Positions 45,332 through 64,000 of a DNA stretch of 64,000 bases are shown piece by piece. The notes under the pieces were generated by a model. It was given only the letters and a program-made list of their open reading frames with translations. It had not been told where the DNA came from and made no database searches. Within the stretch, counting starts at the first letter, position 1, and every line of letters starts with the position of its first letter. Source of the stretch: Takakia lepidozioides (lineage: Eukaryota > Plantae > Bryophyta); assembly GCA_030704615.1 (NCBI GenBank), contig CM060731.1, forward strand, positions 17,112,001 to 17,176,000, in the 5' to 3' direction. Position numbers and translations under genes: made by a program.

Positions 45332-45689
45332 CTCCGTCCCTTCTTCACCTCCGCCACCACACCCACAAGGAGGCAGAGCTCCGGGGCTGCTTGCAAATTC
45401 TTTCAGCAGCCTGCAACATGAACGAACGAGCGCGGACGAACGATTGTGAGGAGGAACGTGAGATGCTCCAGCACCTACTGGATCCTCCATTGCACCTTCT
45501 TCCCGGCTCAGAGGCAGCAGGGGCATCGCGGGCTGTGTTGCCCGTGTGCACCACCAACAACGTTCTTCATCTCTGATGCAGGGAAGCTTTGGGTGGGTGG
45601 GTAATCTGTAGGATAGCCACAGATTGAGAGTGGGGAGAGAAACGCAACCCAACTCACTTGGGTTGTACAAAAAGGCGTCGAGTAGCAGA

Positions 45690-46883
45690 ATGGAAGGCCA
45701 GATCCATCATGTTCAAGGAGATGGCGAGGTTGAGGGAGAACAAGAAGAGTGCCCCACGAGCAAAAAGACTTCACCTTGGCAAAGAATGAAATGGACGGAT
45801 GCCATGGTCAAGATCCTTATCGGTGTAGTGCTAGTGGTGGGGGAAGATAGCAGCATAGATGGCAATGAAGGAAACAACAGCAAGCGGAAGTCAGGTATTA
45901 TCCAAAAGAAGGGAAAGTGGAAGTCGATTTCCAGATTCATGATGGAGAAGGGGTGCTATGTGTCTCCTCAGCAGTGTGAAGATAAGTTTAACGACCTAAA
46001 TAAGAGGTTCAAGAGATTGAATGATATTCTTGGTAAGGATTTGGCTGCTAATGTGGTCGATGATCATTGCCTTTTGGAGGCCGTGGATCACATCCTTCCC
46101 AAAGCCAAAGAGGATTGCAGAAAGATTTTGATCTCCAAGCATCTGTTTTACAACGAAATGGCAGCTTTTCACAGTGGAAACAAGGCTGCACTGTCCTCTG
46201 AGTTAGAATTGCTGCCCTCATTGATGCTGAAGGGCAGAGAATTTGTCGAAACAGGAAAATGCAAGCATGAACAATGCGATGAAGATGATGAGGACATGGA
46301 CGACGACGACGAAGACGAGGAGGAGGATGTTGATGCTGATAATGACCAGGATGATGACGATGATGGGGTAGACGAGGATCTTGAGCCGTTGGCGGATCAC
46401 CTCAGTAAACGCCGGAGGCTGTCAAAGAAGCTGGAAGAAGGCGGTTTAGGTTTATCATCATTATCTTTGCACAATGTTGCGAATGGCATACCCAGGAGTG
46501 TTGAGAATATTAATGCAGACTCAATGGGGATCTTGCAAGTAAGCGCAAAGGCATCTCGGGAACACCAACGCTGGATGAAGAGTAGGACCGTTCAATTAAA
46601 GGAGCAAAAGGTTGGTCTGCAAGTGGAGGCTATCAATCTTGAAAAACAGCGCTTCAAGTGGCAAAAATTCAGCTGCAAAAAGGATAGAGAATTGGAGAGA
46701 TTAAGGCTGGAGAATGAGAGGATGAAGCTTGAGAATGAGAGGATGACGCTACAGTTAAAGCAAAGGGAACTTGAAATAGACTCCCAAAGGTCGGAGACAT
46801 CAATGACCTCTCTGGCGCTTTTATTGGATAGATTGCAGGCAAAGGAGCCGACTGGTCCCAACAAACCTAGCGAGTTAAGTTAG
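45690..46883 (+). CDS. Trihelix (Myb/SANT-like) transcription factor, intronless
   Basis: SPWQRMKWTDAMV, QKKGKWKSIS..M.EKG..VSPQQCEDKFNDLNKRFKRL, SKHLFYNEM, an acidic tract, and a C-terminal coiled coil LEKQRFKW..FS.KKDRELE. First ATG at 45690. Confidence 0.9.
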   Translation: MEGQIHHVQGDGEVEGEQEECPTSKKTSPWQRMKWTDAMVKILIGVVLVVGEDSSIDGNEGNNSKRKSGIIQKKGKWKSISRFMMEKGCYVSPQQCEDKFNDLNKRFKRLNDILGKDLAANVVDDHCLLEAVDHILPKAKEDCRKILISKHLFYNEMAAFHSGNKAALSSELELLPSLMLKGREFVETGKCKHEQCDEDDEDMDDDDEDEEEDVDADNDQDDDDDGVDEDLEPLADHLSKRRRLSKKLEEGGLGLSSLSLHNVANGIPRSVENINADSMGILQVSAKASREHQRWMKSRTVQLKEQKVGLQVEAINLEKQRFKWQKFSCKKDRELERLRLENERMKLENERMTLQLKQRELEIDSQRSETSMTSLALLLDRLQAKEPTGPNKPSELS

Positions 46884-49374: not shown

Positions 49375-52300
49375 CTAGGGGGGACCACGAAGACCAGCAG
49401 CATCATTCCATGCAGCGTGAGTGCTCCCATCGATAGTGGCATGCGTGTTGTCTTCTGCAGGTCTGTGAGATTGGCCACCGATCACAGCCGCACAGTCTGG
49501 ACATCTCGAAGTCTGCATGGGTCCTCCGCATTCTCCCACCACATAAAAGTGGCCATTGGGGCATTTATACCAGTGCCCTCGCCCTCCCACTTCCGCAGTC
49601 ATGACTTTGAGCAATGACCTGCTTGAAAATGTGGTGCTCTTTCGATTTCTCTTTCATTGTCATAGCTGCCCTGCATTGAGGATCATGTTTGAGTACCACA
49701 TCACACAGCAGCAAAACTTGGCTATGTTCGCCCATTAATCTGCCGAGGCATTGTGCCCACAGTATAGTTGCCTGGATGCCTAGTGCCTTATCAGCCCTCG
49801 TGATTGCACAGTCGACACCGATGTTGTTCAATTTGGAACCAAGTGCAGCACATGAGCTACTGGAAGTTCCAATCACGTTGGTCACATCAGCTGCAAGAGG
49901 GCTTCTCTCGACGACTAGGCGGAGGCAAGAGATGGCTTCCTTTCCTTGATTAAGGGCAGAATGTGCACAACCCATGCCAAAGTGGGCTTGTAGAAGCTCT
50001 GGATTTTGCCGTAGAGCTTCAATGAAATGGCCAAGCGCCATTATAGGATCTGCTGTCTTCAGCAATTCATTCCCTTTCCTTGTCATCTCAATGGCGTAAA
50101 TTCTTCGCTTTATTTCATCAACTTGAGCCAGCCTTGTCTTCACAGCAGTCGAGTAGCGGAATGTCTGCTGGATAGGTGTTTTGCAGGCGGGGCTGCAAAA
50201 AAGACAGATTTAGTTAATGCTCATGATCTTCATGAATGCAGATCACTTTAGAACTATCGTTGTGGCATGCAGGCAACTCTCTTGAAAACCGCGCGTGAAT
50301 GATGCTAGCTACTAGGAGCTCTGTACTGAAAATCGACTTGTAAGAAAACATCCACCAGCTCCTCGAGCAACCTGCATTACCGAAAAATTACTGATCTTGA
50401 CTTGTATATCATGTATGCAACATGTTGATTGGAATCCGGTATGTGAAGTCCTAGATGATCACTGTAATTTGGTCAGGATCTCGTTGGCACTTGTTTATCA
50501 TGAGGTCTGCTTATGTACAAGTACGTCAGAAATGTTCAAATTTCTGCCATAGCAAAGGATGAGACTTACCACTGCTTAAGCTTCACAGCGACAGAGGCGC
50601 TAGTACTGTCACAGTCTGTAGGCACGGAGGTTGCGTCGTCATGGTCCATCCAACCATCCAAGCCCGTGACCTCAAACACATGTCCGCAATCCTGCAGTTG
50701 TATGAAACGATCGGCTTCATCGAACTCACTGAGCTTCATTTGCGCTATGACATCAAATTCTTCAGGGTGACAGCGCCGGCATTTGGGGCATGGCTCCCCA
50801 CACAGTCCGCAACATGGATGCTTGCAGGTCCGAAGGGTCTTCTTGCATGGCACATTGCAGCGTGGCCGACGACATATTTGGTAGCACCTGTTGATCAACA
50901 ATCGCGAGGGTCAATGTTAGTGAAAAGAGCGCCCGCTTTTATGCTTCTCTAGATCCGCCAGCACTTGATGTTTCTAGATCAACATAAATCAGGCAGGCAG
51001 GCCTCTATTCAATTCATAGGGACAGTATGGCTGAGGCCCTCGTCATCATGAGGCTCCTGCACTTTGACCTCCCTATGAGTGCCCATCTTCTATGATCATG
51101 ATCAATCTAGATAGCTGTCAAAATCAAGCCATTCTCAAGTAGATGCCATTCATTGGATTACCTGAGCTTGCAACGAAAGTGCTTGCAGCGCCAGGCGCAT
51201 GGCTCAATGCAGGGTCGGCACTTAACTCCACACCCATGTGAGCAACGGCTGTGCACACAACGCCTCTGGCACTTTTGACGGCAGGGTGGACAAGAAAGCA
51301 AGCAGCCTTCCTGACAGGGGTGCGAGCATGGCATGATTCTTGCACATTTTTCTTTGCAAGGAACATGGTTAACCCCTTCCTGGCAGGTGCCACAAGTCCC
51401 TTTACAGAAGTGCCCACACTCAGGAAGCACACTTGTGCATGGCTCACGGCAGAGGTAAGCTGCAATGTCTTGAGAGCAAGGCACCTGAGCTGTGTGACCA
51501 CATGTTAGGACTTTCTCAATCTCTACTTGGCAGAGGTAAACTGCAACATCTTGAGAGCAGGGCACCTGAGCTGTGTGACCACATGTTAGGACTTTCTCAA
51601 TCTCTACTTGGCAGAGGTAAGCTGCAATGTCTTGAGAGCAGGGCACCTGAACTGCGTGACCACATGTCAGAACTTTCTCAATCCTTACTTGGCAAGTCTC
51701 TGGGACTACACATTGGTTTCCACATCGTCTTGGACAGGAATGACCGCAGTCCACCTTTTTCTCACATGGACGTTGGCAGACATACGTATCCACAGCTTGT
51801 GAGCAGCTGATGGTTGCATCATGCCCACATTGAGGCAGTAACTTTGAGACATTCTTGACACAGGGGGGACATTCACTCTCTCCATGGCACCGACATATGC
51901 AATTATGGCCACAGAACTCATGGTTTCTAGCACATGGTTTGGGACATGCAACGTTTTCATGGCCGCCGGGATGGCACCTCCTCGGGCAGGCGTGCCCACA
52001 GTCTAGCTGGTACAGGCAAGGCCTGTTGCAACCCCCATCTTGTACAAGGTTGAAGTCGATAGCGTTGGTGATTTTCGTCTCTGTCTCTGGATGATTTTGG
52101 CAGCTCAAAATAAGCTCAGGGCCCAAGCATTGCTTGCTGTTGAGGCTGTCTATCACTTCCTCCCACAGGCTGCTCCTCAGGCAGAGGAGTTTGGAATTTC
52201 CAAACATGTACAGCCCAATGCGTGCCCTTGACAGCGCAACACACACGCGATTAGCCACACCAACGAAGCCAATTTTTCCTAAGCCATCCTTTCCGGGATG

Positions 52301-55300
52301 CTGGTTGCTTCTTACAAGAGATAATATGATAATGTCGCATTCTTCCCCTTGGAAGTTGTCCACGCTGGTGACTGTTGGATACACGACATGTGTGCCTTGA
52401 AGAGGCACAGACAGGTCTGCAGTAGACGTTTCCGGTGCTGTCAACAAAGTATGCTTCAACACTCCCACCTTTCTGTCTGCAAGAAGGCCTTTAATAAGCG
52501 AAATCTGGCCAGAATACATGCTGAGAATGGTGATGTGCTCGGGGATATATCCTTGCTTTAGAAGGTAGGAGCAGAACTCTACTACAAGCTTAGCCTCCTC
52601 TACATTCTTCTTGCTCCCAGCATCACCGCTGCTGCTCTCTTCAGCTGTGTGATCCAGAAAGAACACATTACTTCTGACTCCTTTAACATCGTCAAAAGTG
52701 GACACAGAGGGGTGATTACGAAGCCGGGGGCCGTAGATGGGAGTGATGAGGGTAGCAATGGAAGGTCGCATCCTCCGTTGCATTTCCAGTGTCACATGCT
52801 GAACACCACCTGACAAAATCACTCTACTTCCATCAGTGACATGCAGAAAATGACAGCTGAAAATCTACGTCAGGCTCATGAATGCATGGAAGTCAGATTC
52901 ACTACTAGCAAGTGTACAGGCAAGGTGTCAGGTTCAGCTCAATTGATACTAGAGAGGCCTACTGGTTACACATGATGCATGCAGAGTTCTAGATACAGAC
53001 AGCTTAAATGATGCGAGCTCGGCTTTCTCCACCTGGCTCTCCAGATTAGAATCATACTGATCATGAAATATTGCAACATCTGAAAGGAGTCAGGAATTTG
53101 TGTTTGCACACTCGTTGTATCTAGGAAGAAAATCACAGCATCTGGAAAAATATGTTACTTGTTGCCAGGCGCTCAAACATGGACACGTCCAGTTTATGTT
53201 GGACTGCAAGGTTATACACTGCAACTGATGGACGCAGCTGCAAATGATCCCCAATCAATATGAGATGCTTCGTGAAAGGGCTGAGGCAGGCCACAATGTG
53301 GGCCTCCAGAACCTCTGCTGCCTCTTCCACAATAACGATCTCCGGTTTCAAAGCCACCAGTAATTCATGGTGACGTGCTGCTGATGTTGTAGTCATCCCT
53401 ACAACTCGGGCATTCCGAAGAAGAGACAGACTGATTTCACTCTCAATTGTCGCTACTGCTCGGCACGCCTCCTCATACCCGGAAAGAAGAGTTTTAATCT
53501 GTGTCCTAGTCTTTTGTTTTATCTCTTCCAACCAGAAATTGTGTAACTGATGCCTAGATGCTGCATCAAGAAGCCAAACATCGGGATAACCAACTATGTC
53601 GTGAAGGGGATACGCTTGGTCCTCTCGCCAACCTTGATCAGTCCCAGATTCGGCCCTATAGGGATCCTCTTCTGGCCCGCGGTTCATGTCCACATCAACT
53701 TGATCCTCGACATGCATAGACTCAATCTCTTTGGACAGGCTGTCATAATATGGACCATTATGAGATACCCCTCCAGTTCCAGCAGAATTTGCAATCAGGC
53801 CTGCATATCCAATGTGTGTTCAAATTATCAAGAACTGTGCTCCTCTCTTCGGAAACTACTGCACCTAGGTGTCGATAAAGAGCACAAACAGGACGACTGA
53901 TTTAAAATGTCGGTCCATGACAGATGCTAGCAATTGATCTACATATATTCAAACAAAGATACAAGTTTACAGTTCCAGGGGGATCCACAGATTCCTGCTG
54001 GGCTTTGTACAATGAGCACTAGATTAAGGTTTCACGTGCGATTGATTATTTACGAGTCCTTGTCAGTGCAATGATCTGCCAAAACCGAAATGGATTCATG
54101 ATCTAGATTGTGTGCCGCGCGGGATAAATTAATACCTAGGTTGCACCTACAGTACCTTCAACTGAGTCGCACTGCAGGGTACTCTCCGTGTGGTCGGGTC
54201 CAAACGCCTCTGCAGATGATGAGCTGCTTTCTGAACTACACTCTCCGTCACTCCAGGTGTCTACTTCATCCTGCAATGCTGAGTAGGGATTAGAAATCTT
54301 CATACGATCTTCCAGGTCAAACTCATGACCCACAGAGTTCCTCAAACCTTGATAATTCATGCGATAGCCGGGATCATATGAAGATTGAAGCCAGACCCCC
54401 ACAGTCGTCTGGGAGTTTTTCGCATTTGCAACGTTAAAGAACAGATGGGCAATCTGGTCCTTAGTTGCCACGCCACGCAGAGATTCCTTTGTCACCACTT
54501 TCATGTCCATGACTTTCAGAAGCTGAGTCAAGCTCTCCTCCAGTGCTTCTTTTGCCCTTTTTGATGTCTGGAGTTCATGGTGGTGAGCAATGTCAAGGCT
54601 CTTTGCAGACCTTTTCTCTTGTATAAGTGTATGCAAGCAGCGTTCCTGCAAAGTTTCGCTTTTGCTTCTGGCACCAAGACGGATAAGACAATTCTCATAC
54701 TTGTAAATGCCCTCTAAGAACTGATCCAGTGCATGGTTGGTAAAACAAACCACCAAGATGGGTCCTTGAACTAGAGCATTCTCAGTTTCCAGGGAAGGCC
54801 TCCTATGATTCAGACCCTTCAGCTCGGCCCCCGAGCCGCAACCCCGCCCGTTCCCCCACCTCCCCCTCCCCCTACCTTCCCCTCGCCCCGCCCGCGCGCC
54901 AGTGCTTGAAGAGGATTGTAGTCCTACGTCCAACCCGTAGACGTTTGCAAGTAAGACTCGCACTGCAAGCAGCCCTATGAAGGTTTTGCCTGTGCCCGGG
55001 GGCCCTTGGATTAAGGCAATTTCCTTTGTCAATGCATGTCTCAGCGCCCTCATCTGGCTGCAGTCAAGTGAAGAGGTGAATGACGGCCATTCTTCCAACA
55101 CGTTCAGGGTTTTCCTCCCGATATCTCTCTCCAACTCCGGAAAAATACAGCTCATATCGTACTGTAGGCCATTTTTACCCCCCAGAAGATAGCTGGGTGG
55201 ATTCACCATGGGCTCAAGGTTGACGAGGTGCCTTGAGAATGGGATATTCTCCATTTCCTCCTGCTGCAAACACTTCAATGCATGTGAATATGCCTCGAAA

Positions 55301-58300
55301 TATGCGGAGGAGGACTCCACCATGACATAGACCTTGCCTATGTGCAATAAACACTCTGCTGGTCCGATAAAGCGGACATCAATCACGCCCTTTTCTATAG
55401 CGCTAACATCTCGATGTGCCACTATTGCACAGCCTTGGATTGACTGGAAATCGTCCTGAGATATGCATAGCAAAGACCCCATCATCAGACTTTGATCAGC
55501 CTCCAAACGAGGGTCTCCCCTTGAAGGTTTGGCCCAGGTGTCAAAGGACAAACGGAATTCCGTGCCAGAAAAACCACATCGAAGGCCTAAGAGCTTGACA
55601 TGACGATAGACGCGCAAACCTTGGACCCCATGCCTGCCATGCGCGGCTGGCATTTGGTAGGACCGAATCCCGGCTCTGAGTGGCTCAATATAATCTTCCC
55701 GCAGAAGCAGAAATTGGGTTTCCAGATACTCCAATATCGATGTGTAGCGCACACCAACAAGGTTGACTGGCAGTGCAACATGCTCACGAGATAGAAGCTC
55801 ATCCTCACTCGGCATTATAGACATGCTCTGGAACTCCTTTCCCTGGCAGAGACAACATGTGTATTTAAAGGCAAGTTAGTCGAGCCCTACTCTCGCCCTA
55901 CTGCATGTACATTTGAAAATATTCTTTCCGAGTTGAACTACTCCATGTACATCATGTATGATCCTTGGGTTGCCGGAGTGCTGAGCTAGGTAATGAAACC
56001 TGCCGGAGAACAGGTCTATAGATTTGCATTTCTGTTATGGCACCTCTGTACAGTAATTATTTGTTAGATCAGAGCCATGATGTCCATACTCGTACGTGAC
56101 TGGAGAGCCAAAGATGATACATACATGTGGACCACTTGGTCAACTTGAAATCTGAGTGTACTAATTCACGGACCTCGGAGGAGCTGGACCTCCGAGACAC
56201 CGCAGCAGAGGAGAGCTCGCTGATCAACGGAGATCATCTATGAACATACAGGTCGCAATATAATAATTGGACATAATTCCCGGGATGTGCCAACTGGTAG
56301 ACTCAGGAACTTAGTCCTGATCAGAGAGAATCTTGTTCAAATAGTTTGACCGACAATTCATCTTGAGGAAACCTTAGGGAAAAGAACAGGTCTCGAGTTA
56401 CATGTTATGTACAGTACCTTCAAGGTGTCGTGTGGTTTCTCAGTTGCCAGAAGCCACCGTTGTTTGTCCCGGTGCGCAAGTAAGCGAGCTACATCATTTG
56501 CCAGCGCGTCCTTGGCTGAGCTGCCAGGGAGCGACTCCAAATGGCTCTTCACAGCATCCAGAGGAATCACCTTCCATCCATCTGAGGTGCGAGTTTGTAT
56601 CTCTTCTAGGACTGAGAGGTAAGCCTGCACAACGTCCATGGATTCATTTACGATTTGCACTTGAGAGATCTCAAACATAGCAAGTTTCATCACCAAACCG
56701 ATTCACTGGCGCTGCTAGGCAGTTAACATAGTCCGTATCTCATCACTACAGTTGACCGATTTTAGTACTCGTGACGTGTTTTGATGCCGATCTGTCTGCA
56801 TGAATACATCTAGCCCATTAAAGGTACAATATATATATGGGCAATGTGAAAGGTGGTAGAGTCCAACATGGATCTGATGTGAACTGTTATGTGCGCTGGA
56901 GACCACAAGATGTGCAGGTTGTATTTGCTCGACAAGAATATTTGCACTGAGATGGCGTTCTACTCGAGCATGATTGCGTAGTGCTTACGTAGCTTATGAA
57001 ATAACTCTACAGTTCAATTTCTCCGTGCAGCCTGCAAGATTAAATACTCCTGCTACATGACCCCAAAGTTTCTCACTATATCAGTTGACACACAATACGA
57101 GTGAAGTACTTAATTTAATTTAAAGTAAGCCAGTACCTGTAGGGCTCTGGAGCTTGGTCTCGCAAGTCCTTGGAGATGGGCTGACAAATTTGTCAGAAAT
57201 GATGACCTTGGCAAAATTCCGTATATTTTGTTGGTGCTTTCAAGCATCATGCTTGACCGGATCTCTTGTTTTCCCAGTAACGAGATTAGCATCTCAATAA
57301 CGGTCTCCGATAGATTGTGCTGCTCCACCAGATCTGAGAGCTCGGCTAGACCCTGACCATTGCTCAAGTAAACTATATTCTCTGAAGCAGGTTTTTTGAG
57401 CTGAATTTGTAACCATGCTTCCATCTGGTTAGATGAACGGAACCGAACTACACGACTGGTCACATCATTACAGTGCGAAAATCTGCATCTCGTCCCAGAC
57501 CTGCATCTTCCAACCTGGAAATTGCAACAAATTATCTTACCCCCTCCCCTACTTGGTGATCCTGGCGCTCGCAATACTGGAGGTCGATAGAACTGCTTAC
57601 TGTTAACATGACGGATTATTGTGAACTTGGGTAGGGGAATGTAGACTGCCTGTTGTTGCAAATACAGCAGTGCCTGCTGGAGTGATTCGTCATCGTCAAC
57701 AACAATTTTCTCTCCAGAAGTGTCACAATATCGAGCTTCGAGGCTTAGCTGTACTGAGCCTGATTTTAATAACCCTTCATTGAGACTAGAGAGAGCAGAA
57801 AAGGATTCGACCATCAGTTTCCGGAAGATACTGAATTCGCCCGACAAACTAGGCAGGACCACTATCTTGACGCTGTTTTCATACTCCAGCTTGATACGGA
57901 TTTTACTTTCACAACTTGAGACCTGCACGCGCCAACATGTGTGCGCAAATTATGTGAAACTGACATTTCTTAGCGGACAGTTCGACCACAAATCCCGTAT
58001 ATCTCCCGTACATATGCATGCATGATAGATATATAATCTGAGTACACATTGTAATCAAGCTAATCGGTTCAAATTATGTACAGTACTGGCTTCAAATGCA
58101 CATCCCTCATGACTTATATCATGTATAAATTTGAACGACCTCAAGGATCAATGTTAAAGGTCCGAAGTTTAGGTCAAGGATGCCGTAAGCACATTGTAAA
58201 CACTAAGGGTTCGATCTAGATGTCCATATCGAGTACTGGAAAGACACACAGGGACGTAACACTGCGTCGAAGACATCAGAATGTCATGCAGGAATCGCGG

Positions 58301-58662
58301 CCTCATATCATCTGCACGAATCTGTGGGATGGCTGTGCAGGTAAGGACATTATGAACTCTACACAGTAGCTGGATTCCAATATGTAAGGTATGAAAAGAA
58401 AAACTTGTATACATGGAGTGAGACTTACACATTGTAGCTCTCCCGGCACAGTCATGATACGGACTGTAGATAACAGCTCCGAACTCTCCTCTAAGTTCTT
58501 AGGCTCCTGTGGTGGATTAGATTGCAGGCTCGTCGCAGACCCGACAGAGAGGGGAATCCAGCGATCAGGCTGGTGCCACACCCTGCTGCTCTTGGGTCCT
58601 CTGTGCTTGGAGTGCGACTGGGTCTCTTCAACTGGGAACGCCTTATTTGACCCTCTACCCAT
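49375..58662 (-). CDS. ZNFX1-like SF1 RNA helicase / E3-ligase with added PB1, CCCH and TPR-like domains (copy 1; frameshift before the RZ finger)
   Basis: Exons 58662-58429, 57922-57137, 56624-56418, 55842-54156, 53800-53159, 52809-51162, 50887-50570 and 50192-49375, all junctions in phase. ZNFX1-type motifs: YLETQFLLLREDYIEPLR, IQGPPGTGKT, VCFTNHALDQFLE, VEEAAEVLEAH, IGDHLQLRP, VDNFQGEECD, VALSRA, a CGH-x-C NF-X1 array, IQLQDCGHVFE...CPACKTPI, and RZ finger HWYKCPNGHFYVVGECGGPM..SRCPDC..VIGGQSH. Confidence 0.9.
51449..51692 (-). repeat. 81-bp coding tandem repeat, three copies, expanding the NF-X1 finger array
   Basis: Near-identical units start at 51449, 51530 and 51611, each encoding EKVLTCGH..QVPCSQD.A.YLCQVEI (27 aa). 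Confidence 0.9.
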
Positions 58663-61600
58663 ATTTTCCGACTTTCTCTGTGGCCCTTACCTTTCAAGCG
58701 ATTGTTCGAGCAGATCAGCTCCCACCCACCGATAAAGTTCTACTTATATACCCTTTCCTCTGCCTCTCGCGGAATCTCTCCGATCAGCCGATATGGACTT
58801 TCTCATGTGCAACTATCTATCAATCTCTAGCACACGGACTGAACTCCTCCTTTGCTCCTTCAACAACCGTATCAGGCTTGTATCCCTTCGGCTCCCTCTA
58901 TAGTGATCAGTGCAGACGCTGGCGGCGGCGTTCGAGCGTTGTGACGTCAACTTCATTGATGAGACCCCTCCATGCAAAATATCAGCCTCACTTGAAATGA
59001 TGGCGTATTTACGCCGTCGCTCGTACTGATCACGGACGGACGATGAGCAGCCAAGGAACATTCCAAAGTTGTTATCGATTTGATGACAACCGCCTTTCCT
59101 CGTCTACCTCACCCATCGCCGTCACACTTCTCTGCCTCGGAGGCGCAGGATTTTGAAGGACACCCATGTGATGTTTCGCAACAGAGATCTGTTGGTCTGG
59201 TAAGTATGTATATGTGTATATATGTATATGTTGATCTCAACACGATACCAGACCAACTTAAGATCACAGCCTTCAGGGAAGACTTATGTGTGATCATAGC
59301 GTATACTACATCAATGGGCTCAGATCAAAGGACGAGCTTCAGCAAAAGCGAGCAAGAATCATACTAAGAGCAGGGCCGATCAGATAGGGACAGATCGCTA
59401 ATTGAGCGCAGAAAATTCTATAGTACCGTCGCAAGAACGCAAACTTGGCAAGGAGCTCAGAATCAATCGATTACAAGTACTGTTTAATCACCACAGAAGG
59501 TGATTTCAGCGATCATGCAACTAGGGCTCATTCACAGAGATCCGAGATCCAATTGCCGCAGGATTGCAACCGAATCAGTACTGTGGGATGCAGGAACAAC
59601 AACTTGGTAGATTGTGTACTCTCGATCTGGTGCGTTGTATGCGATCAAAGAATCCAGATGATGCATGCACAGGTCAATCCTGTTTCGCTGTAAGTAAAAG
59701 TTATGACTGCTTTTCCCAACCTGTTAAAATTGCCCAAAAGCTTATTTTGTATAAATATTATATATATATATATGTCTACTGGGGACTATTTTTGGGGCGT
59801 GGCAAGTAGTTGTCAGTGTGATTATCATCCTATTTTCTGCCCAATCTCAGTATTTATTTATCCAACTCAGTCTAAGAAATGACTCACAAAAGCATGCGGG
59901 CCATTCCTAATCTTCCAATTTGAGCTCTTGCACTACCCTTGCTGGTATCACCACTCTGGTATGATGAGTATGGAGGCTGAATACAGTACATGTTTTGGAC
60001 CATATCAAACACACATTCTTCAATACTTTCAAGTCTGGATTTGCCGCACTCTACTTGTATTTTATATGTCATTGGGCTTGCTTAGAATCGCTCTTGTGGT
60101 ACTCTAGGCGGAGTTGATATTAGCTAGTATGAGTTTCTACACCATTGTCAACTGATATTGGAGTTTGTAAGTCGCATTGGTGCCATTCCTGATACCCTAG
60201 AGGTACTAGAATCCAGGTTTTTTCTTAGTATTCCAAACCAGTGTTGAGGACATGTGCAAATTTTGTACTACCAAGAGACTCGTGGTATTCCAAAACCACC
60301 ATACCACACCAACAGTGGTGCCTAGTACCTACCGTTCGATACGACTGACTACAAATTCAGTCATATATATGCAGTCATAAAACTGTAATCTGTTGGCGAC
60401 TGATCCCTCCGTGTTCAGTTAGTACGACCGACGCCATGCGCGCCGTCGCTAAGTAGTTATGTAGTACGCCGTCATTTGGAAGCGAGGCTGATATTTTGCA
60501 TGCACGGGTCTATTCAATGCAGTTGTGTCCCTTCACTCGCTGTAGAGGGAGCGCAAACGCTCAAAGGCATCCTGTTGATCAACATCTGCATCCCTGAGAA
60601 GCTAATATGCGTGCGGTAGAGATTGAGAGAGTTGTGAGGCAGCCCATATCGGGGGATTGGAGAGAGTCGAGGCAGAGGAAAGGTTTCCCATTTCGGTGGG
60701 TGGGGAGCTGCTCATTTGAAGGCTATGGGGAGAAAACGGCCTGAAAAAATGGGTAGAGGATCAAATCCAGTTGACGAAACCGGGGCGAAATCAGGAGGCG
60801 TGATTAATACCAGGGTGGCGCGTCGGCCAGATCGTTGGATTCCCCTCTCTTTCGTGTCTGCGAACAGACTGCATGGGTACTCTGAGCAATGTAATCCACC
60901 GCAGGAGGCTAAGTCGAAGTTAGAGGCAAGTTCGGAGGTGTTGTCTACTGTCCCTATCATGTCTGCGCCGCCGAGAGACCTTCAAAGTGTAAGTCTCACT
61001 CCATGTTTTCTTTTAGTAGGTCTTGCATATTACTCAAGAGAATGACTTTAGCATCAACCTGGACAGAACTTAATAACTTACCTGCGGGCCATCCCACATA
61101 TTCTTAGCCAAGCAAATCAGTAAACTTCAAAGTGCCAATACTTCGTATCAGTCGTATTCTTGAATCAGGGATAACGAAAGATCGTGCAGATGATATCAGG
61201 CCAAGCTTCAAGCGACTGGGCTGCAAATGACATTCTCATATCTTAGACGTGTACAGTGTGTCTTTCCAGTCGTCGAAGTGGACAACCCTTTTAGTATTTA
61301 CATTGTGCATCTTGAAAAAATTTCCTACTCCCTGCAGGTCTCAAGTTGTGAAAGTAAACTGCGCTCGAAAATCCGTATTAAGCTGGAGTATGAAAACAGC
61401 GTCAAGATAGTGGTCCTGCCTTTATCGGGCGAATTCAGTATCTTCCGGAAACTGATGGTCGAATCCTTTTCTGCTCTCTCTAGTCTCAATGAAGGGTTAT
61501 TAAAATCAGGCTCACAGGTAAGCCTCGAAGCTCGATATTGTGACACTTCCGGAGAGCAAATTGTTGTTGACGATAACGAATCTCTCCAGCAGGCACTACT

Positions 61601-64000
61601 GGAGTTGCAACAACAGGCAGACATTCCTGTACCCAAGTTCACAATTACTGTAACTAACAGTTCGCCGTTCTATCGACCTCCAATATTGCTAGCGCCCGGA
61701 TCACCAAGTGGGGGCGGGGGAAGGATAATTTGTCGCAATTTCCAGGTTGGAAGATGCAGCTTTGGGGCAAGATGCAGATTTTCGCACAATGATGTGACCA
61801 GTCGTGTACTTCAGTTCCGTTCATCTAAGCAGATGGAAGCATGGCTACACTTTCAGCTCAAAAAACCTGCTTCAGAGAATATAGTTTACTTGAGCAATGG
61901 TAAGGGTCTAGCCGAGCTCTCAGATCTGGTGGAGCAGCAGAAGCTGTCGGAGACAGTTATTGAGATGCTCATCTCCTTACTTGGAAAACAAGAGATACGC
62001 TCAAGCATGATGCTTGAAAACACCAACAAAATATATGGAATTTTGCCAAGGTCGTCATTTCTGACAAATCTGTCAGCCCATATCCAAGCACTTCCGAACC
62101 CAAGTTCCAGAGCTCTGCAGGTACATGTGCCCCGGTTCACCTAATTAATTAACGTGTTGATATAGCGAGAAATATTGGGGTCGTGTAGCAGCCCTGGGTT
62201 CTTGCAGGCTGCACAGAGAATTGTACTAGTTATACAGCCAATCGTGCTCGATTCCGACGCCCTTTAGTCCAAGTAAGTGGCTCGGAAAAATACTAGGCCT
62301 GCACATCGAGTGCACATCTTGTGGTCTCCAGCAGTCACATCATGTGCATGTCCTTTGGACCCTACCATCTGATGGCAATGATCGCTACAGCCAGAGCTGC
62401 ACATCAGAATGTGAATACTAAAATCCGTTGACTTCAGGAAGTACGTGAACAGCCCATCTGAAGTGAGCACGAGCAGTGAATCGGTTTGGTGATGAAACAT
62501 TTTATGTTTGATCTTACAAATCGTATTGATGGAGATCGCGTGTGCAGGCTTACATCTCAGTCCTCGAAGAGATACAAACTCGCACCTCAGATGGATGGAA
62601 GGTGATTCCTCTGGATGCTGTGAAGAGCCATTTGGAGTCGCTCCCTGGCAGCTCAGTCAAGGACGCACTGGCAAATGATGTAGCTCGCTTACTTGCGCAC
62701 CGTCACAAACAACGGTGGCTTCTGGCAACTGAGAAACCACACGACACCTTGAAGGTACTGTAACATGTAACTTCAAGGACCTACCGGTTTTCCCTATTGA
62801 TCAATTGTCGGTTAAACAGAGCTTCTTTCTCTCTTATAAAGCACCAAATTTCATTTCATTTCTAAGTCTACCAGTTGGCACATATGCCAAGTTACATACA
62901 TGAACATTCTATGTATATCATCTATAGACTTACTGTATTGCAACCTCTATACATCTTCGCACATCTGCTTTTGTATGATCTGAATAGCTCTCCTCTTGAA
63001 AGCATTGGTGCGCGGTGTTTCTTAGGCCCTGGAAGACGTCCTTGGATTCTAGTAGTCTTTCAAGTTGACCACCTGGTTGGTCTACATCATCTTTGGCTCT
63101 ACAGTCCGTTCCACCTACATGTCACATGTCTAGATCACATGTTTACGTAGATGCCTATATGTTCAGAAAATGCAGATCAATCGTTCTGGACAGGTTTCCT
63201 CACTTAGCAGCACTCACAACAACCTGAGGATCATGTACCTACAAGGAGGAGCTGTTTCAATGAGCAATCTTGAAAAGAATATTTCTGTACACAGTAAGTA
63301 CTAAGGCTCTTGAGACTAAATCTGTTGGCATACGTGTATGTCTCTCGCAGGGAAAGGAGTTCCAAAATATGTCTATAGTGCCGAGTCAGGATGAGCTTCT
63401 ATCTCGTGAGCATGTTGCACTGCCACTCAACCTTGTTGGTGTGCGCTACACATCGATAATGGAGTATCTCGAGACCCAATTTCTGCTTCTGCGGGAAGAT
63501 TTTATTGAGCCACTCAGAGCCGGGATTAGGTCCTACCAAATGCCAGCCGTCCAGGCCAGCCATGACAGGGTCCAAGAGTTGCGTGTCTATCGTCATGTCC
63601 AGCTCGTAGGACTTCGATGTGGTTCTTCTGGCATGGAATTCCGTTTGTCCTTCAGGGTCAAACCTTCAAGGGGAGCCTCCCGCTTGGAGGCTGATAAAAG
63701 TCTGATGATGGGATCTTTACTATGTATATCTCAGGATGATTTCCAGTCAGTCCAAGGCTGTGCAATAGTGGCACATCGAGATGCTACGGCTGTAGCAAAT
63801 CCTGGTATGATTGATGTCCAATTCATCGGACCAGCAGATCAGTGGTTACTGGACATAGGCAAGGTCTATGTTATGGTGGAGTCCTCCTCCGCATATTTCG
63901 AGGCATATTCACATGCATTGAAGTGTTTGCAGCAGGAGGAAATGGAGAATATCCCATTCTCAAGGTACCTCGTCAACCTTGAGCCCATGGTGAATCCACC
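55198..64000. repeat. Large inverted duplication: arms about 55198-59045 and 60400-64000 (continuing beyond the window), spacer about 1.35 kb
   Basis: Reverse-complement matches cover exons and upstream DNA, e.g. CATGCAAAATATCAGCCTC (about 58971) vs GAGGCTGATATTTTGCATG (about 60484), and CCCACCCACCGA (58721) vs TCGGTGGGTGGG (about 60693). Confidence 0.9.
60725..64000 (+). CDS. ZNFX1-like paralogue (copy 2), divergently oriented; runs off the window end
   Basis: Exons 60725-60988, 61338-62120 (PB1 + CCCH), 62548-62754 and 63351->64000. They are open, in phase and have the same intron positions as copy 1, with closely similar peptides. Confidence 0.88.

Follow-up and report, generated by a model that had tools for sequence, protein, structure and literature searches.

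Genes arranged head to head are familiar from the immunity of flowering plants, where nucleotide-binding leucine-rich repeat (NLR) receptor pairs such as RGA4/RGA5 and RRS1/RPS4 join two unlike proteins, only one of them with an integrated decoy domain. Some inverted or palindromic duplicates, among them the palindromes of sex chromosomes, are kept similar by gene conversion from arm to arm, conversion limited to exons occurs in small gene families, and inverted duplication is also a route to new small-RNA loci. Here we describe an inverted pair of genes related to ZNFX1 in a 64,000-nucleotide stretch of the genome of the bryophyte Takakia lepidozioides (assembly GCA_030704615.1, contig CM060731.1, positions 17,112,001 to 17,176,000 of the forward strand), which we call the window and in whose numbering all coordinates are given. 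Human ZNFX1 is a superfamily 1 (SF1) RNA helicase and RZ/Miz-type E3 ubiquitin ligase that forms polymers; it ubiquitylates in trans, and truncations without the RZ finger are loss-of-function (bioRxiv 10.1101/2025.10.14.682297). Judged from their domains, the two Takakia genes encode a PB1-CCCH-ZNFX1-type SF1 helicase, and the pair is best regarded as an unremarkable outcome of tandem duplication in inverted orientation. The explanation that we favour with good, though not full, confidence is a lineage-specific, head-to-head duplication of a single gene of this type. The duplicated unit would have included about 285-345 bp of 5′ flank, each copy keeping its promoter-proximal DNA beside a 1.46-kb spacer; the duplication would be old, both copies would since have stayed open under purifying selection with the same domains and no detectable asymmetry, and their exons may have been homogenised by occasional conversion between the inverted arms.

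The arrangement itself is clear. An inverted-repeat search of 44-64 kb of the window returned 12 pairs of inverted arms, all between 55196-58993 and 60480-64000 and with 81-99% complementarity, and a blastn comparison of the right-hand part with the remaining sequence gave six collinear inverted blocks. Copy 1 lies on the minus strand and copy 2 on the plus strand, head to head and pointing outward, with 2,087 nt between their ATG codons. A first-pass annotation of this DNA had put the start codons 2.06 kb apart; the close spacing stands, but the exact figure had been measured from a TTG at 60716. Gene models were read base by base from the alignment of the arms, with exon 1 and all splice sites inferred from conservation, and copy 1 was also aligned by tblastn along its whole length (57898 to 49390) with P0153, a transcript-derived homologue of 1,992 amino acids that ends in an RZ finger. 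The features are as follows.

About 55196-59007 and 60465-64000: arms of the inverted repeat.
58429-58662, minus strand: copy 1 exon 1, with 78 codons from the ATG at 58662, which probably encode a disordered extension of the N-terminus; its ATG, frame and GTAAGT donor are shared with copy 2.
57137-57922, minus strand: copy 1 exon 2, 262 codons, with PB1 (about 57611-57904), CCCH finger (about 57458-57532) and a helical region; AG acceptor and GT donor located, and matched by tblastn with P0153.
56418-56624, minus strand: copy 1 exon 3, 69 codons.
54139-55842, minus strand: copy 1 exon 4, given as the limits of its open frame (3′ donor unmapped), with the ZNFX1 domain and the first helicase lobe (Pfam ZNFX1 and AAA_11; tblastn against P0153).
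49390-54138, minus strand: remainder of copy 1, with helicase lobe 2, NFX1-type zinc fingers, TPR and RZ finger (Pfam AAA_11, AAA_12 and TPR; P0153 aligned throughout).
60749-60988, plus strand: copy 2 exon 1, ATG at 60749, 80 codons.
61338-62120, plus strand: copy 2 exon 2, 261 codons, with PB1 (about 61368-61658), CCCH finger and helical region.
62548-62754, plus strand: copy 2 exon 3, 69 codons.
63351-64000, plus strand: copy 2 exon 4, with a complete ZNFX1 domain; no stop interrupts the frame before the window edge, which cuts the exon.

Copy 2 is visible up to codon 216 of exon 4, and all comparisons of the two copies cover the N-terminal third of the protein (about 630 codons). The three introns common to both copies lie at homologous positions, all in phase 0 and all with GT-AG borders, and these junctions and the arm alignment confirm the earlier claim of head-to-head paralogues with identical intron positions. 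A global alignment of the arms alternates between high identity in the exons (86-99%) and low, gap-rich identity in the introns (about 50-68%), in keeping with the first-pass description of conserved exons and strongly diverged introns. The count of about three residue differences in exon 3 was likewise right (3 of 69), as was the observation that exon indels preserve the frame: all 15 are multiples of three, including the five in exon 1, and the 612 aligned codons contain no stop. The first intron of copy 2 holds an in-frame ATG 111 nt upstream of exon 2 (61227-61337) that opens straight into PB1 and could serve as an alternative start if transcription begins within the intron; intron 1 of copy 1 has no counterpart of it.

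Short reads agree with the inverted arrangement. Four DNA runs of one sample contain about 0.9 of the words sampled from the window, and a Logan short-read contig of 3,414 nt (two runs) lies on 57717-61133 with 1-2 base differences, beginning inside copy 1 exon 2, taking in that copy's first intron and first exon and the whole spacer, and ending past copy 2 exon 1 in its intron 1. The contig that crosses both first exons and the spacer upholds the arrangement by a method independent of the assembly, though not by independent material, the runs probably coming from the same sample.

The domain content was established by Pfam and protein searches made exon by exon rather than on the joined spliced protein. 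The Pfam CCCH finger is found in exon 2 of both copies (37 bits in copy 2) and the ZNFX1 domain (PF25396) in exon 4 of both (65-67.5 bits in copy 1, 74.5 bits in copy 2). Downstream of the ZNFX1 domain, Pfam places AAA_11, AAA_12 and TPR in copy 1, the counterpart region of copy 2 lying outside the window, and copy 1 has the layout of the ZNFX1 family, i.e., a ZNFX1 domain followed by the SF1 helicase core (AAA_11, AAA_12). NFX1-type zinc fingers are also present in copy 1, as is an RZ finger whose frame, in the assembly, is shifted by a single base relative to the exon before it. The ZNFX1 domain, the AAA_11/AAA_12 core, the NFX1-type zinc-finger stalk and the C-terminal RZ finger are all shared with human ZNFX1, and by this homology the Takakia protein presumably combines an RNA-binding helicase with a ubiquitin ligase of the RZ/Miz type. 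The plant-type protein differs from the human one in its extra N-terminal PB1, CCCH finger and TPR segment; the human protein, to whose known mechanism self-assembly belongs, dimerises via an armadillo domain and without PB1.

The N-terminal domain can be accepted as PB1 because the homologue P0153 scores above threshold and because the predicted fold matches solved PB1 domains. The Takakia copies themselves reach 17.0 bits (copy 1) and 16.8 bits (copy 2) for Pfam PB1 (PF00564; E about 0.006), under the gathering threshold of 23.6 bits, while the same N-terminus scores 39.5 bits in P0153 and 22.4 bits in the Riccia homologue P0014, and the N-terminal gene model of Marchantia carries the UniRef label "PB1 domain-containing protein". 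An AlphaFold2 model of residues 1-112 of copy 2 exon 2, made from an input alignment of only 6 sequences, has a mean predicted local distance difference test score (pLDDT) of 74.7 and the element order beta1-beta2-alpha1-beta3-beta4-alpha2-beta5 of PB1. Its top Foldseek matches in the PDB are the PB1 domains 1wj6, 1wmh, 2bkf, 6tgs and 2npt (E 1e-4 to 1e-3; template modelling score 0.7-0.8 by target); NBR1, Par6, aPKC, MEK5 and MEKK3 are the proteins whose PB1 domains match best. The beta-1 lysine is found in both copies and does not vary among the six aligned sequences, and both copies also hold an acidic motif, D-T-S-G-E ... D-D-D/N-E, with its first Asp and its Gly invariant. The earlier statement that both copies keep the basic lysine and the acidic patch is therefore borne out by the alignment, with an acidic motif that is partial, one canonical acidic position being Ser. 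A conserved lysine together with an acidic OPCA motif would mark a PB1 domain of type AB, to which the Takakia domain can be assigned only tentatively. On the acidic face copy 2 differs from copy 1 by two charges (K to Q and D to N). Such a domain would supply a head-to-tail oligomerisation module, and two near-identical PB1 domains could mix in one polymer. In the literature library searched, no paper used both "ZNFX1" and "PB1 domain".

An exhaustive protein search with exon 4 found 3,712 relatives, the best of them 48-56% identical; the closest named ones come from the liverworts Calypogeia fissa, Riccia fluitans, R. sorocarpa and Marchantia polymorpha, the alga Mesotaenium, the fern Ceratopteris and the conifer Cryptomeria. 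A word search with exon 2 (261 amino acids), whose length filter shuts out full-length relatives, returned no match. Orthologues in Marchantia (MARPO_0032s0139/0140), Riccia fluitans (KAL2634476.1), Calypogeia fissa, Ceratopteris, Cryptomeria and Mesotaenium share the PB1-CCCH-ZNFX1-helicase-NFX1-TPR-RZ layout and are 38-52% identical in exon 4. To place the pair in this family we read six liverwort loci, each with 10 kb of flank (Riccia fluitans 1, R. sorocarpa 1, Calypogeia fissa 3, Marchantia polymorpha 1). In contrast to Takakia, tblastn found a single gene on one strand at each, and an inverted partner at none of the six within the flank of about 10 kb, which suggests that the head-to-head arrangement is lineage-specific as far as is visible. 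The Riccia fluitans locus (L001) differs further in that its matches to exon 2 and exon 3 lie 16 nt apart, hence with no intron between them. Public annotations of Calypogeia fissa and Marchantia polymorpha split the orthologue into two or three adjacent models covering PB1/CCCH, helicase and TPR/RZ (L003 9216-15931, L006 9076-13741, L002 10001-16850), and the full architecture is therefore hidden in databases.

The DNA between the genes records the extent of the duplicated unit. The first-pass annotation had seen here one divergent intergenic region shared by both genes; what is present instead is two duplicated 5′ flanks on either side of a unique spacer.

58663-59007, minus strand: duplicated 5′ flank of copy 1, about 345 nt, with a conserved block at 58948-59007; by blastn the flanks are 85% identical over 61 nt and 68-75% elsewhere.
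60465-60748, plus strand: duplicated 5′ flank of copy 2, about 285 nt, with the conserved block at 60465-60525.
59008-60464: unique spacer, 1,457 nt, with two short AT-rich microsatellites; spanned by the short-read contig.

The spacer has no match elsewhere in the window. Duplicated flanks around a unique spacer point to two duplicated promoters rather than one shared bidirectional promoter, in which starts on opposite strands would lie less than about 1 kb from each other; the same promoter is probably present twice, once per gene, at a distance of about 1.4-1.5 kb, and similar regulation of the copies through these duplicated promoters is plausible. The 61-nt block (58948-59007/60465-60525), 85% conserved and with a 19-nt identical core containing a TGCATG motif, forms the distal end of both flanks, with the ATGs some 225-345 nt downstream of it, and is a candidate core promoter or cis element.

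Rates of divergence differ strongly between classes of sites. Jukes-Cantor distances between the copies are 0.41-0.53 for introns over all aligned columns, 0.46-0.64 for ungapped intron blocks of at least 25 columns and 0.43 for the duplicated 5′ flank; at 4-fold sites they are 0.37 in exon 1, 0.18 in exon 2, 0.09 in exon 3 and 0.09 in exon 4. The duplication would be old, judged from the neutral sites (introns and 5′ flank), at which the copies are about 0.45-0.55 substitutions per site apart. In exons 2-4 the synonymous sites have diverged 2.5 to 5 times less than the introns (26 of 223 4-fold sites differ, vs 311 of 814 columns in ungapped intron blocks; p 1.6e-15), while exon 1 differs at 7 of 24 4-fold sites. 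Introns do not normally evolve several-fold faster than synonymous sites, which leaves two readings: partial homogenisation of the exons some time after the duplication, or constraint on the synonymous sites. The most likely cause, to which we give about an even chance, would be occasional, exon-limited gene conversion between the inverted arms, a reading drawn from the contrast of rates between the two copies (best protein match outside them 48-56% identical). As in palindromic duplicates, inverted arms surround a unique spacer, and the coding arms are more alike than the flanking non-coding DNA, even at 4-fold sites; unlike the classical palindromes of sex chromosomes, whose arms are identical at 99.9% or more, the arms here are far less similar. 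Intron 2 contains islands of 79-100% identity amid otherwise diverged sequence (57020-57083/62158-62218 and 56684-56708/62474-62498), which could be splicing or regulatory elements or leftover conversion tracts.

Both copies are under moderate purifying selection over the visible codons. By the Nei-Gojobori method, synonymous (dS) and nonsynonymous (dN) divergence between copy 1 and copy 2 are 0.44 and 0.24 in exon 1, 0.16 and 0.073 in exon 2, 0.06 and 0.019 in exon 3, and 0.17 and 0.084 in exon 4. The overall ratio of dN to dS (omega) is 0.49, well away from 1 (Fisher p 1.4e-5), which, with indels that keep the frame, supports the earlier suggestion of selection on both genes; constraint is strongest in the helical part of exon 2 (omega 0.27), and the values for the short linker and for the CCCH segment are indistinguishable from 1. 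The copies are about 88% identical and have the same domain set. Derived amino-acid changes, polarised under strict rules in a symmetric multiple alignment with eight outgroups, number 7 vs 8, and the visible part of neither copy carries any sign of decay or specialisation. An apparent faster evolution of copy 2 (12 vs 37 derived changes), obtained with outgroups aligned to copy 1 alone, was rejected as alignment bias, having disappeared in the symmetric alignment.

A single asymmetry came to light, at the C-terminal end of copy 1 and beyond the interval 55198-64000 of the first-pass annotation.

49605-49609, minus strand: apparent +1 frameshift in copy 1, between the frame of the TPR exon (stop at 49565) and the RZ frame (49602-49390).

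The shift was recognised from two tblastn segments that overlap in different frames, with which three-frame translations agree, and its site is near a "caaa" at 49606-49609 (minus strand). A splice that bypasses it was excluded, as the homologue aligns gap-free across the site and the frames overlap. Because the RZ frame is still open and 79% identical to the distant homologue P0153, a very recent lesion or a base-calling error fits better than an old division of labour between the copies. If real, the frameshift could matter, given that RZ-less truncations of human ZNFX1 are loss-of-function. About 2.5 kb past the 3′ end of copy 1, on the plus strand (45624-46883), a single-exon frame of 419 amino acids encodes a Myb/SANT-like (trihelix-type) domain (PF13837, 47 bits) with an acidic and coiled-coil tail.

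Several points weigh against our account of an old duplication with two intact, partly homogenised copies. The apparent frameshift ahead of the RZ finger of copy 1 is one. On conversion the evidence is divided: the contrast between exon and intron rates is strong, but a runs-of-identity test for conversion tracts is weakly significant (p 0.009-0.07), and identity falls sharply exactly at exon borders, which fits selection better than random conversion tracts; conversion would need tracts limited by mismatch, or else the synonymous sites are constrained. The pairwise omega is also compatible with one lineage being more relaxed than the other. The statement that both copies are intact applies to the N-terminal third alone, the helicase, zinc fingers and RZ finger of copy 2 lying past the window. 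Lastly, two possible RNA runs, which give transcript support for neither copy, match only a short repeat and nothing elsewhere in the genes.

61104-61180: short high-copy repeat in copy 2 intron 1, with a contig word depth of about 3,800 vs about 30 nearby; probably a fragment of a very abundant repeat.

The same gaps at the 3′ end leave some room for a locus with one working gene and a remnant, in which copy 2 is a 5′ fragment or becomes a pseudogene further downstream. That only four exons of copy 2 fall within the window, and that the possible RNA runs match the repeat alone, are compatible with a partial or decaying copy; yet its 612 codons are open with every indel in frame, omega is 0.49, derived changes are equally shared, and copy 2 outscores copy 1 for both the CCCH finger and the ZNFX1 domain. 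We regard a remnant as rather unlikely and retain the duplication of a gene whose two copies both persist.

A more far-reaching proposal is that the genes form a co-regulated functional pair in the manner of head-to-head NLRs, their products co-polymerising through PB1, with one sensing and the other executing. The divergent orientation with 2.09 kb between the ATGs lends itself to this proposal, as do the retention in both copies of the PB1 lysine and acidic stretch (copy 2 having Q for K and N for D on the acidic face), the out-of-frame RZ finger of copy 1 in the assembly, and the behaviour of human ZNFX1, which polymerises, ubiquitylates in trans and loses function on truncation of the RZ finger. 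The features expected of specialised partners are nevertheless not those of this locus, whose paralogues share about 88% identity and a common domain set over the visible part, have diverged symmetrically (7 vs 8), possess each their own duplicated 5′ flank and have no counterpart pair at the six liverwort loci, and the open, 79% identical RZ frame of copy 1 is better explained by a recent lesion or base error. We therefore hold the functional pair to be improbable. The likeness to sensor-plus-executor NLR pairs drawn in the first-pass annotation holds for the divergent orientation and short intergenic region, and the helicase family is, like NLRs, linked to innate immunity (in animals); it fails for the partners, which here are near-identical helicase paralogues, each with a duplicated promoter region. 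In its most specific form, a single PB1-driven hetero-polymer in which copy 1, without an in-frame RZ finger, would act as RNA-sensing scaffold and copy 2 would contribute the RZ ligase in trans, the proposal is by analogy conceivable but highly doubtful; if true, it would make the locus a helicase-family counterpart of the paired plant immune receptors.

In another reading the inverted repeat would serve chiefly as a source of hairpin RNA: one transcript spanning the two arms would form a long, imperfect double strand and give rise to small RNAs directed at the gene family. The arms do have 86-99% complementarity in stretches of exon size that lie 3.5-8.5 kb apart. Each arm has, however, retained its open frames under selection, and with outward-pointing promoters no known transcript would cover the two; we consider this a very slim prospect. 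An assembly artefact is hardly credible, be it a foldback, a chimeric join or an inverted fusion of two alleles or haplotigs. Inverted repeats inside contigs are a known failure mode of long-read assembly, and the supporting runs probably derive from the assembly's own sample. The locus nevertheless contains no N runs, and the de Bruijn contig assembled from the short reads of two runs spans the spacer and the first exon of each copy with 1-2 differences. Between the arms, about 10% of exon positions and about 40% of intron positions differ, and indels are many, which excludes a foldback artefact and allelic haplotigs.

Inverted tandem duplication thus remains the explanation that we prefer, and under it the pair may be useful for testing whether inverted arms undergo gene conversion confined to their exons. 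Should the two proteins co-assemble, the locus would also provide a simple genetic handle on how polymerisation controls signalling by ZNFX1-type helicase/ligases. The more unusual feature is less the pair itself than the architecture that both copies appear to share: a non-seed-plant relative of the antiviral sensor ZNFX1 with a PB1 oligomerisation front end.

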